Source: Trichosphaerium sp. ATCC 40318
Taxonomy: Eukaryota > Protista > Tubulinea
Direction: 5' to 3'
NCBI GenBank assembly: GCA_038496445.1
Contig: JALMLS010000598.1
Location: 127,828-191,827, forward strand
Length of the DNA stretch: 64,000 nt
Under the pieces are notes generated by a model. It searched no databases. It was not told the origin of the DNA and saw only the letters and a list, made by a program, of their open reading frames with translations. Position 1 is the stretch's first letter, and each line of letters starts with the position of its first letter. Made by a program: the position numbers and the translations under genes. Below are positions 15,099 to 19,163 of the stretch, one piece after another.

Positions 15099-18000
15099 AT
15101 GGCAGCAGCGTTATACTGCAGTGTTACGATCGCTTTAGTCTTCTTTGTGTCGAGTTCCCTTTCCGATTCAAGCGCTTCTCCTGATATTATCTTCACTTGT
15201 AACGCTACAGCTACAAACTGGGGATGCCCTCCGACTGATTGGCAGAACGTAACAGTTACCGTAAATGGCGAGGAAGTGCAAGTACCAGACCGCTTAGTCT
15301 GTGAAACGATACCAGAACCACTCATGAGTTGGGCAACAAAGGCGGTCCGGACTGATAACTATAAGGTTTTCGTTGGCCCACAGGATAACCCACAGACCGA
15401 GTATGTGCCTGGGAGTATCCTCGAAGTAACCGTACTTACCACAAAGTACTGGTCAAAGTACAGAGGGTTGATGATGTACGATCACTTTTATCTTTTGTCA
15501 TCTTACGCTTTTGGTTCCCTCTACAAACGTAACCGACTAATAATGTTTTAAGGTACGCTGAAGATTCGAACAACAATCACGTGGGAGAATGGAAGATACC
15601 TGATGATTTCCCACGTGCGTAAACACAAATTTAATTGCTTTTGTAGATAGATCTTTCGCTTTTTTCATCTTTTTGTATTGCAGTGCCTGCAACATGACCT
15701 TACACCTATGTTTAGCCACATTCCAGTTGCCTTGGGCGTCCGATCATCAAACTTGCGCTCATACGTTGATGCACGCGACTGCTCAATTGAAGCCTTTGAG
15801 CTCGACTATTGCGTTTGTAGCTCCACCGAAGGGTACTGGAAAAATCACTTTCCGAGCACTCATAAAGAGCGGTGATGCCAACACAGGTGACTTTTGGTGG
15901 CCTAATATGGATGGTGACTTTACAATGACCGAATCAAGTGAATCACTTCCAACAAACACAGGATGGTTCCAAACAGAGGTACTTTGCTAACAACTATTTA
16001 TTTATTATCTTACTCTTTCAAAGCTTGGCCAATCTTGTACTGAGCGATGTGAGATGGAAAATCTTGAATGCGACTTAGTATCTTTGGAGAGTATAAACAG
16101 TATTGATAAGATTAACTCCGAATTGAAAGTATCTGGCTTTTTATGCAAGAAACCCTTCCTCAGCGGATGTAGCGCTCTTGGTACAACACAAAGTACAGCA
16201 GGATTTTGTTACTATGACGATACAAGATGTGCTACTCAAGGCCGCTCTAATGATAGAGTAAGTTGTGATGCAACGAGTACAAATGAAGAAGATGGGTATG
16301 TTTGCATCTTACTTTCTTCTTTGTTTTCTAACTTCTTCTCTAAGCATGCGCTTTTGTCGATGCTTGGATGCTACCCTAGCACCAGTCTCACTAGATAACA
16401 CTACTGTACCTTCCGACTATGGCGATCCAAACGACACATCTTCATCCTCCCGACCAATCATCTCCGTTTTGTTGCTATGCTTGTGCACATTCGGTATTGC
16501 TTTCTTCACATCCCAAAATGGTCGTACATCAGCTCCATTTATCCTTGGGCTATTACTCATCGCTATAATCCTATTGCCTTCAGCTCACGGACACAACTGG
16601 CTAACAGGTGTTAGCCGATCACCACGTGCAAGCACAGAACAACCATGTCCACCTAAGAGTCAAGACGGACCTCATGTTCAAGTTGGTCCTGGTCAAGAAT
16701 TTGAACTAGAATTTGTTCAAGGTCACGCTGGCTTTTCTTACTTTGCGATTGTTAACAAGAAGAACGAGGATAAATTAAAAGTCCACGGAAACTATCTTTT
16801 TGTGAAATACTTCAACGAAGCGCCTGCATCAGCAATCTCATCAATTCCCGTTTTTCACAGACGTTTTAAAAACCGTGCTGCAACAGCGACAGACGACTTC
16901 TTAGGACCACAGATTCTCGAGACAGATCCTGCCTTTATACCTAGACCAGAAGCTTTTGGAGGATGGATAGCTGCCGCAAAGTTGTTTCCATACTTACCAG
17001 AGTATCGTCAAAACAATTACGCTGAATATGAACATCCAGATATGCCTTGGATTGAAGGTGTTTTCAGATCAAGACATATCGTCAAGAGAACTCAAGATTC
17101 TGATGTTGTTAAGATTAAGATACCTGAGCACCTTGAAAAGGGAAGTTATATTATTCATTGGGTCTGGAATGGATATCGTGACTGTATAGATGTTGAATAT
17201 GTTGATCAACAAGTTGAGCATATTTACGGACTTAAACTAAACGGGACATCATACACGTGCGTTCTTCAAAATATATAAATGTCAATTGTACTTATCAATT
17301 GTGCTTAGGCGTGTGGATCACTGTTTCTTCCCACAGTACAGAAGTGCAGGAAGTACGAACTTAACTTTAAAACCATTTTCTAACAGTTTTTTTTTCAGCA
17401 TGTACAAAAATCTACAATGACTTCTCTTACTGTGCTCGAACATGTGGTACAAACTGTTATGGTATCGCTGTTATGCCTCTATCAGTTGCATCAACATACG
17501 CAGAAGAAGCTTCACTTGTTGATAGTGGTTGTTTTGAGAACTTCGATAACTTTACAGCAATTGAAAACCCTGAGGATATAAACGTTTGTTTCTCTGTACA
17601 AGCAAGAATACCGTCCGAAACCGTTGGAGAAACAGAGATAGTCTTTGAGGGTGATCCTGCCTATAGAGCCACATGCTATGTGAAAGGAACTGGCCGTTTG
17701 TTTCTGGGATATGAACCAGATACAGAAAAAGAAATACCATGGAGACACGGAGATAAATGCATCGATTGCAACACAAGAGAACTCAACAAAGACTTATCAT
17801 TGTTCAACATACCAAACTGGCCGCTCTCTGAAGATTGTATAAACTGTGACCTTGAACCTGTAGTAGTTACCAAGCCAAAGGTACCTAAGTTAATCAACGA
17901 ACAGTCCAGTATGGCTTGCAACGGAGCAAAGAACGTTTGGACTAAAGTGAACGGAGAGAACCATTACAGCTGTAATGGAACAAATAACGAAGTTTCTGCG

Positions 18001-18252
18001 CTATGTCATAAACAACTTAGATTCGATGGTCGACTAGAAAAAACTGATGCTTTCTTCCCTTCAGAGTGTGCTATGGCTGCTAGCTTGGATCCTGAATGTA
18101 CAGACAAGATCACAATGTTCGATCGCACCTTCGTTTACGGTGGTGTAACCGCTGGCCAGTGCTTTTGTCAGACAAAGGTTGAATGCTGTAACGGTTGCTC
18201 ACTGGTTGATAGAGGTGTTAACTATCACTCTTATGATCTTACAATGGTTTGA
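15099..18252 (+). CDS. Secretory polyprotein-like: signal peptide, Reeler domain, Cys-rich domain, TM, internal signal peptide, LPMO-like (His-brace) domain, Cys-rich tail (7 exons)
   Basis: Six GT-AG introns, each restoring frame, join ORFs 15099, 15673, 16054, 16265 and 17473. Reeler motifs YVPG..YRGLMMYA..VGEW..LMH..FVAPPKGTGKITFRA. LPMO-like motifs PSAHG-HNWL, QGHAGFSYF, GSYIIHWVWNGYRDCIDV. Confidence 0.75.
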
Positions 18253-18404
18253 AGTATTACAACAAACTAAAATTACTAATAAAAACATTATCATTACCAC
18301 CCGTCTTTATAAATTCTGTCTTAAAGTATTACAAAATCGTAATATACCGTTCCTTTAGATTTCGTAAATCTAAAGTTTTTGAAGGTAAGCAAAGCGACAA
18401 TGTC

Positions 18405-18650
18405 AAAATTTTGCCATCGATATTTCTCACACTGCAATCGCTGATGAAGACATAAAATATCTACAAGGTGTTCATATCATTGCTCTTGACCACACTCCAG
18501 TTACTGATGAAGGTATTAAAGAGCTAAATGGGTTCATACCATCAATGATCAGTGCTAGTGGTTGATGTGACAGATGTTGGTGTTAGAGCGCTAAAAGGTC
18601 TTGATTCTATTACCTATGATCAAATTCAATCACAGATGAGACTGTAAACG
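18405..18650 (+). pseudogene. Decayed LRR fragment of the F-box/LRR family
   Basis: Translates as AIDISHTAIADEDIKYLQGVHIIALDHTPVTDEGIKELNG, then frameshifts and stops. Confidence 0.7.
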
Positions 18651-19163
18651 GTATTAATAGAATAGAATATCTTAATGTTAAGACAGTATTAAATGGTTTT
18701 GGTAGTAGCGACAAACTACATCTTGAAGAACCTCAATATCTTTTCCCATCACGTGAATATTATCGTGAACAGCAAACCATTCTAATTGTAAGTTACAGCT
18801 AACACATCACGAGCTGAGAACTTAAACAGTAATTGTTATTATAAATTAGAGAAGTAACTTCTGGTTACACGAACAACTTTCAGTTTTGCGTGTCGGCCTG
18901 TTTGAATGGACGCACAAACCGAAACCCTACCAAAGTGGATGTCCATACGCGGTTATATTTTAATACGATACATAACACAACGCTAGTAAATCACATACTC
19001 TTAGAAAACTATACGCCAAGATAATCTAATAGATGATGGTATAGCATCGCCGTAGACATTTCAGGTGCAAAGTGAACTAGCGTTACGGATGCATCATGCA
19101 TTTTGACCCAAAGAAAAAGTGTTCACTATCTTTTTTATTTTTTTCAACAAAAAACTTTCTCAC

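Follow-up and report, generated by a model that had tools for sequence, protein, structure and literature searches.

An internal signal peptide may set free a histidine-first, LPMO-like domain from a Reeler precursor of the protist Trichosphaerium

The 64,000-nucleotide (nt) stretch of contig JALMLS010000598.1 of Trichosphaerium sp. ATCC 40318 analyzed here (the window) contains a gene of seven exons, in which a Reeler-type half is followed by two hydrophobic segments separated by a short loop (the hairpin) and then by a domain that starts with the residues His-Asn-Trp (the HNW domain) and resembles the lytic polysaccharide monooxygenases (LPMOs). The product is probably a secretory precursor that the signal peptidase of the endoplasmic reticulum (ER) splits co-translationally into two proteins. 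In the mechanism that we propose, the N-terminal signal peptide would start translocation and take the Reeler half into the lumen, the first helix of the hairpin would stop the transfer and leave the loop in the cytosol, and the second would re-open the translocon in the manner of a signal peptide and be cut after Gly407. The products would be a membrane-anchored Reeler protein and a soluble protein with His408 as its first residue. The amine and imidazole of this residue, together with His452 and Tyr602, would make up a histidine brace for copper like that of LPMOs and X325/Bim1 proteins, and a PAN/apple-like tail would attach to a target, either a glycan or a protein. The features on which this proposal is built are the following (coordinates of the window; aa, amino acids):

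15099-18252, plus strand: whole gene, 7 exons, 927-aa precursor, GT..AG introns, no stop
15099-15475, 15553-15614, 15716-15978, 16024-16295, 16345-17256, 17309-17352 and 17399-18252, plus strand: exons 1 to 7
15099-15164, plus strand: N-terminal signal peptide (aa 1-22), a hydrophobic segment in the hydropathy scan
15321-15921, plus strand: Reeler-type domain (about aa 75-215) in exons 1-3, recognised through collinear relatives
16024-16375, plus strand: Cys-rich module (about aa 235-335) in exon 4 and the start of exon 5, ending in R-x-C-x-C
16457-16513, plus strand: hydrophobic segment 1 (aa 363-381), putative stop-transfer helix, from the hydropathy scan and hydrophobic also in relatives
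16514-16537, plus strand: short polar loop (aa 382-389), presumably cytosolic, with one basic residue (Arg) and no Asp or Glu
16538-16591, plus strand: hydrophobic segment 2 (aa 390-407), putative internal signal peptide ending in P-S-A-H-G, predicted cut after Gly407
16592-17254, plus strand: HNW domain (aa 408-628), probable LPMO-like beta-sandwich by family matches, structure model and structural alignment
16724-16726, plus strand: His452 (His45 of the domain, in the Gly-His pair at aa 451-452), conserved
17141-17194, plus strand: GSYIIHWVWNGYRDCIDV, as read in the sequence
about 17165-17194, plus strand: W-x-G-Y-R-D-C-I-D-V strand (about aa 599-608)
17174-17176, plus strand: Tyr602 (Tyr195 of the domain), conserved

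An earlier note on this DNA, made from its letters alone, had described a spliced open reading frame (ORF) running without interruption from 15099 to 18252, and the gene rebuilt from the raw sequence bears this out. Its six introns measure 45-101 nt each, are all GT..AG and have a GC content of 24-35% (exons 43%). The spliced coding sequence has 2784 nt (927 codons without stop), with an in-frame TAG 9 nt 5' of the ATG and a poly(A) signal at 18278, 26 nt past the stop codon; read unspliced, it runs into a stop at codon 151. A single BLASTP high-scoring segment pair (HSP) joins aa 8-924 to residues 13-893 of the relative P0001 (36% identity, E 3e-171), and P0003, P0004, P0010, P0013, P0019 and P0030 are likewise collinear with the precursor over its full length in a single HSP. 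This collinearity validates all splice junctions, including those of the 44-nt exon 6. That the gene is one ORF is essentially certain.

The border between the two halves falls inside exon 5 (16345-17256), which opens in the R-x-C-x-C end of the Cys-rich module and contains the two hydrophobic segments as well as the entire HNW domain. The halves are not separated by any intron, stop or start codon, and there is indeed no Met between hydrophobic segment 1 and His408, as had been noticed before. The nearest in-frame Met 5' of His408 is aa 326, which we have rejected as a separate start since it is part of the upstream module's conserved R-x-C-x-C motif. One could still take the layout for two adjacent genes, or for an assembly or annotation artefact, read as one ORF, given that it resembles a secreted protein with a GPI (glycosylphosphatidylinositol)-type tail in front of a second one that starts with its own signal peptide. 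Because a single exon holds the last part of the Cys-rich module, the hairpin and all of the His-start domain, with no own start before hydrophobic segment 2, two genes are in practice excluded, and the same continuous design is found on transcripts and in an intron-free genomic ORF of other organisms; we regard the two-gene explanation as extremely improbable. The whole precursor is present in single Trinity transcripts of the amoeba Flabellula baltica (P0004 and P0171) and in an MMETSP transcript of the P0011 cluster. The contig of P0001 (L001) is intron-free and has a 45-nt leader with an in-frame TGA, and P0170 is an uninterrupted ORF of 3831 nt, with a Reeler match, on a 182-kb genomic contig where it is flanked by ordinary eukaryotic genes. 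For Trichosphaerium itself, a look-up of sequencing runs listed none. Within the window, tblastn found no paralogue of the gene. A scan for bacterial promoters and terminators around the hairpin, of a type not meaningful for a eukaryote, was empty.

To delimit the family we have used the HNW domain (aa 408-628) as query in an exhaustive phmmer search, counting the matches as clusters at 50% identity. There were 351 clusters at E ≤ 1e-3 and 171 at E ≤ 1e-10, all of them, where named at all, annotated as hypothetical proteins, and in nearly every match the alignment started at the His. We call a member internal when this His is more than 70 residues into the protein and N-terminal when it is within 70 residues of the initiator Met. 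The phmmer matches plus a further match set provided 96 internal and 42 N-terminal members. The architecture of the Trichosphaerium precursor (Reeler, membrane helix, signal peptide, His) is not confined to it: a hairpin precedes the internal HNW domain in 96 relatives, and among the N-terminal parts of 71 relatives Pfam recognised a Reeler domain (PF02014) in 28 (best E 3e-11), with several scoring above the gathering threshold. In a FastTree phylogeny of 114 domains the internal and N-terminal forms were interspersed, requiring 24 changes, of which the starred branches force at least 11, and some of the N-terminal forms made up exclusive, well-supported clades. The simplest reading of this interspersion is that the two kinds of signal are interchangeable, so that both are cut.

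One N-terminal relative, P0017, deserves a comment on its start. Its contig (L002), from a public metatranscriptome, opens at positions 1-10 with ACATGGGGG, which we take to be the tail of a SMART template-switch oligo. If so, the cDNA would be complete at its 5' end, and the protein would in fact start as M-N-Y-N...F-V-F-S/HNW. The protein as called begins 10 residues early, with an artefactual M-G-E, and P0027, P0028 and P0049 also start with M-G-E.

All the pieces of the hairpin that the earlier note had listed, hydrophobic 1, the loop TSQNGRTSAP (about aa 380-389, about 16508-16537; 8-10 residues) and hydrophobic 2 with small residues at -3 and -1, could be located in the sequence. Hydrophobic segment 2 has an h-region of 13 residues, Pro at -5, Ala at -3 and Gly at -1, and His408 (16592-16594) follows directly after P-S-A-H-G. 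Throughout the 96 internal forms the position -1 is occupied by small residues (A76/G13/S7) and so is -3, with some Val (A39/V26/T10/S10/C7/G4), Pro is enriched at -5/-4, and positions +1 to +3 read H96, N95 and W95; the N-terminal forms have the same cleavage-motif pattern. The His at +1 is found in 96/96 internal and 42/42 N-terminal forms, with a single Asp exception elsewhere (P0070). Apart from this motif the sequence of the hydrophobic segments is not conserved among the relatives, and we therefore conclude that selection acts on the signal-peptidase motif and not on a structural helix. The n-, h- and c-region build and the -3/-1 rule hold in all 96 internal forms, and by these same marks the segment before His408 is predicted to be a textbook case of a signal peptide and not a membrane helix. 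Two plausible cut sites exposing a His had been proposed. One of them, AHG/HNW (16591/16592), is backed by the conservation in the family and we are fairly confident that the signal peptidase would cut there; the other, PSA/HGH, is not, and was rejected because the family-conserved His is that of HNW.

The topology proposed at the outset (lumen, stop-transfer helix, cytosolic loop, re-entering signal) agrees with hydropathy, charge, and the counts of Cys and glycosylation sequons. In 73 of the 96 internal forms we detected two clean hydrophobic peaks with a polar valley between them, and 68 of these 73 have a Lys or Arg in the valley; the remaining internal forms are mostly hairpins missed by our crude parser. 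That such a pattern is kept across 96 diverged relatives, in which the hairpin sequences have otherwise not been conserved, is far beyond chance. The N-terminal part has 14 Cys and four N-x-S/T sequons, the C-terminal part 24 Cys and three sequons. Being Cys-rich, with even Cys counts and N-glycosylation sequons, both halves should be lumenal, and a hairpin is then required between them. Reeler and PAN/apple are moreover extracellular domain types, which fits this placement. The even Cys counts (14 and 24) would need no disulfide between the fragments.

A hairpin could also be a permanent anchor. The precursor would then be an uncleaved two-pass protein with both domains on one cell-surface chain and without a free N-terminal His. 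Cleavage is, after all, deduced from sequence, internal hydrophobic segments often stay uncut, and hydrophobic segment 2 with its flank comes to 18 residues, near the size of a short membrane helix. Against this, its h-region has only 13 residues, and the Pro at -5 and the small residues at -3/-1 are maintained in 96/96 internal forms while the rest of the segment is free to vary. Some 40 relatives have the HNW domain at the mature N-terminus, with repeated switching between the two forms, and an invariant His at +1 would be hard to account for if it were buried in a membrane-adjacent chain. We think that an uncleaved anchor is unlikely, and prefer a precursor cut in front of His408.

The nature of the released half is the second question. 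The second His at 16724 and the strand downstream, both pointed out before, are in place (His452 at 16724-16726 and the stretch at 17141-17194), and both hold conserved positions of the family. Conserved in the domain are H1, N2, W3, R9, P18, G44, H45, Y73, Y146, P152, G184, W192, G194, Y195, D197 and D200. All 16 are present in this gene, which has an Asn at a further near-invariant column, D141. H45 is invariant and Y195, within W-x-G-Y-x-D-C-x-D-V, is at least 90% conserved. It is the free amine of His1 that binds the copper of an LPMO, hence the place of the catalytic domain at the start of the mature chain, and both the H-x5-P-S-R start and the Y-x-D-C-x-D-V strand of the HNW domain resemble motifs of AA10, AA15 and AA9.

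An AlphaFold2 (AF2) model built from the 114-sequence alignment (predicted local distance difference test, pLDDT, 93; predicted template modelling score, pTM, 0.90) is a beta-sandwich with two short helices. We have compared it exhaustively with 48,161 chains using VIA-align. The first rank went to LaX325 (PDB 6ibh), an LPMO-like copper protein (Z 7.5-7.6, 124 aligned residues, root-mean-square deviation, rmsd, 3.2 Å) and the second to an AA15 LPMO of Thermobia domestica (PDB 5msz; Z 7.4, 115 aligned, rmsd 2.6 Å), while the matches to AA9, AA10, AA11, AA13 and AA16 had Z values of 5.3-6.3; all Z values are thus below 8, a range that according to the tool can reflect a mere shared beta-sandwich. 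Sixteen of the top 50 were LPMOs or LPMO-like proteins (AA9, AA10, AA11, AA13, AA15, AA16, X325), and residue 1 of the model was aligned to the mature His of each LPMO chain, for example residue 28 of CBP21 and residue 35 of CelS2. The best match in the ESM-Atlas (TM-score 0.54, 152 residues) was a eukaryotic cluster with LPMO_10 in 19% of its members. A language-model search gave LPMO_10/chitin-binding type-4 clusters as 43 of 60 named neighbours (score 0.90, 194/256 shared features), with BIM1-like clusters further down the list. The only Pfam family matched by more than one member was AA9, marginally, in 4 of 114 (best E 0.0057). Searches with the window's HNW domain of Pfam, of PDB sequences (with the single sequence and with the 114-member profile) and, for the 114 members, of NCBIfam gave no meaningful match.

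The fold evidence alone is suggestive of kinship with LPMOs. Taking it together with the language-model and weak profile matches, in which the best hits are again LPMOs or LPMO-like proteins, aligned from the mature His1, we consider it likely that the HNW domain is kin to the LPMO superfamily. The likeness to LPMOs claimed earlier is thereby supported. The domain is a member of none of AA10, AA11 and AA15, and is best regarded as a new LPMO-like family outside these and the other existing ones. For a functional copper histidine brace made by His408, His452 and Tyr602, predicted from the conserved positions, we put the chances somewhat above even.

Several points weigh against the proposal of a split precursor with a copper-binding product. 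In Trichosphaerium itself the cut is predicted from motif conservation and the single transcript from the genomic sequence, and the convergence of His1, His45 and Tyr195 on one site is a prediction from conservation as well. Some of the N-terminal relatives, including some of the switches in the tree, may be truncated gene calls. On the structural side, to the low Z range given above has to be added that Foldseek found no match at E ≤ 1e-3 for the HNW model against the PDB, and no profile search ties the domain to any LPMO family (AA9, LPMO_10, AA11, AA13-AA17) above threshold. Its role may be that of an enzyme or of a copper-handling protein, the best structural match, X325, binding copper without shown LPMO activity.

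The last point can be turned into another explanation, namely a precursor that is cleaved as proposed but liberates a non-oxidative domain, engaged in copper handling or sensing like X325/Bim1 or acting as a binding module built on an LPMO-type sandwich. Having copper-binding LaX325 as the best structural match, BIM1-like clusters in the language-model list and no LPMO family profile matched would all suit this, and so would the downstream membrane helix and WW domain of some relatives, an arrangement that looks receptor-like. Yet AA15 scores as well as X325, and Y195 in its Y-x-D-C-x-D-V strand and the N-terminal motif of H-x5-P-S-R type resemble catalytic LPMOs, as known from the motifs of AA9, AA10 and AA15. 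The DOMON and plastocyanin-type cupredoxin partners described below would suit the supply of electrons to an enzyme. A non-oxidative domain seems to us rather improbable, if less so than an uncleaved anchor, and we keep to a His-brace protein of LPMO type as the product of the cut. The relatives with the membrane helix and WW domain are long members of the family, P0025 (helix at 1581-1608) and P0034 (1506-1534), in which the helix comes late and the WW domain is C-terminal. In these two the HNW half would remain membrane-bound with a cytosolic tail, receptor-like and not secreted. A few other relatives have Laminin_G_3, F5/8-type C or WxxW domains.

The half that would stay in the membrane had been described as a Reeler domain followed by a Cys-rich domain. 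For the Reeler domain this is supported by way of the collinear relatives, of which P0119 (40 bits) and P0082 (31 bits) pass the Pfam threshold and align with the N-terminal part of the window's protein across their Reeler regions (E 2e-25 and 1e-35, respectively); the separate exon pieces of the window themselves gave no Reeler match in Pfam. The Cys columns of the Cys-rich module and its R-x-C-x-C end are nearly invariant in the alignment of relatives. In 13 of the 71 the module is matched, weakly (best E 1e-5), by positions ~470-557 of the Pfam family Glyco_transf_18 (PF15024, GnT-V), and this GnT-V-tail-like module may be a shared small disulfide-rich module. Between these domains and the hairpin some relatives have additional ones. 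P0073 (339-436) and P0082 (512-558) have a DOMON domain just upstream of the hairpin, and P0084 (366-441) has a plastocyanin/azurin-type cupredoxin (32.6 bits) directly before it. These are electron-transfer or heme-binding types, and this suggests that the anchored half may serve the copper domain; it is possible that the upstream cupredoxin or DOMON would act as electron donor for the released copper domain. Only as a tentative idea, and one that we would not expect to hold in full, do we put forward a widespread protist design in which one cut makes the N-terminal copper His of a new LPMO-type family and leaves the Reeler partner, in some lineages enlarged by DOMON or a plastocyanin-type cupredoxin, anchored 1:1 in the same membrane patch as electron donor or substrate holder.

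A comparison with known systems shows that the ingredients of this design are familiar. In X325 (LaX325) and AA15, as in the HNW family, the first His comes after a signal-peptidase site, the second His and the Tyr are conserved and the proteins are secreted or extracellular. They differ in that the domain follows directly after an N-terminal signal peptide, whereas here it starts at residue 408 behind a membrane hairpin, and they have no detectable sequence relationship with the HNW domain, whose start, R9, Y73 and D-C-x-D are specific to its family. With AA9, AA10, AA11, AA13 and AA16 the HNW domain appears to have the immunoglobulin-like sandwich in common, all scores being below the family thresholds. 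On the Reeler side there are the Reeler-DOMON-cytochrome b561 proteins of the ferric-chelate reductase 1/SDR2 type. They share the Reeler domain and, in the case of some HNW relatives, DOMON, and are extracellular and possibly redox-linked; the HNW precursor lacks a cytochrome b561, and its Reeler domain is followed by the GnT-V-tail-like Cys module and the hairpin.

For the processing, the earlier note had thought of virus polyproteins. In the polyproteins of flaviviruses and in the Gn/Gc polyproteins of bunyaviruses an internal hydrophobic signal with a signal-peptidase site separates two lumenal proteins. The idea of an internal-signal cut is supported, but such processing is not solely viral, and the gene studied here belongs to a cellular, intron-containing protist family with one predicted internal cut and no viral context. 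A cellular precedent is provided by the mouse astrotactins. Behind a signal peptide and a lumenal N-domain they have two membrane helices and then a large lumenal C-domain, and the cut by the ER signal peptidase falls after helix 2 (bioRxiv 10.1101/493858). Astrotactins 1 and 2, which are vertebrate membrane proteins, have the same topology as the Reeler-HNW precursor, for which the cut is deduced from the motif. Their domains are unrelated to those of the precursor, their fragments are linked by one disulfide (even Cys counts are found here), and their new N-terminus has no known chemical role, whereas that of the Reeler-HNW precursor would be a metal ligand.

Our full-text searches of the literature retrieved no description of an LPMO or LPMO-like domain that follows an internal signal peptide or is joined to a Reeler domain. 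AA18, reportedly a bacterial enzyme of a different type, was considered as a prior description of the HNW design and rejected, being another enzyme. It is the newest LPMO family cited in 2026 papers, where it is attributed to Santos et al. 2025.

What would be new is the combination of a histidine-brace protein and a signal-peptidase-matured hairpin precursor, each of a kind already known. To our knowledge, in all LPMOs and LPMO-like copper proteins described so far the mature chain begins with the catalytic domain. In the HNW family the His-start domain is at the N-terminus in about 40 cases, while in about 100 it is hundreds of residues inside the protein and the free His is apparently recovered by an internal signal peptide. 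If this is true, there would be a new LPMO-type family common in protists, marine plankton transcript sets included, and genome mining for histidine-brace proteins would have to look beyond N-termini. It would also be the second cellular case, after the astrotactins, of the signal peptidase as a maturation protease, here with an evident chemical purpose. The constant association with Reeler, DOMON or cupredoxin domains would provide a testable lead to the natural redox partner and to the function of Reeler domains.

The hairpin has one more peculiarity, which touches on its origin. The Ser-rich stretch in front of it (16421-16456, aa 351-362) together with hydrophobic segment 1 (16457-16513) resembles the omega region and tail of a GPI-attachment signal, and stretches rich in Ser, Ala and Gly occur at this position in relatives as well. 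The design could have arisen by fusion of a GPI-type Reeler gene with a gene for a secreted HNW protein downstream of it. As a test of such a fusion we have looked for stand-alone proteins with a Reeler domain and a Cys-rich module that end after hydrophobic segment 1; the matches were limited to fragments, truncated contigs and a single questionable gene call.

Downstream of the HNW domain the released protein would have two further regions:

17309-17871 (intron 17353-17398 excluded), plus strand: conserved Cys-rich middle region (aa 629-801), from the alignment of relatives
17872-18249, plus strand: PAN/apple-like domain (aa 802-927), from an AF2 model (pLDDT 82) and VIA-align

The middle region starts with exon 6 (17309-17352), a micro-exon of 44 nt that encodes the motif R-x-D-H-C-x-F (here R-V-D-H-C-F-F). 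Its D-H-C is nearly invariant, and this conserved His and Cys may provide additional metal or disulfide sites. For this region (aa 629-801) VIA-align gave no clear fold match (Z <3). The tail (aa 802-927) had no Pfam match, and Foldseek found none in the PDB at E ≤ 1e-3 (best E 0.16). With VIA-align its matches were PAN/apple, MANEC or WSC domains in 19 of the top 20 and 21 of the top 26 (Z 7.0 to 4.2), among them apple domains of lectin type and, from fungal copper radical oxidases, PAN and WSC modules. Beyond the gene, beginning about 130 nt past its stop, the plus strand of the window has reading frames resembling leucine-rich repeats (LRR) at 18380-18800, such as 'DHTPVTDEGIKELNG'. They are interrupted by stops or frame changes, which points to a spliced LRR gene or else to a decayed copy.

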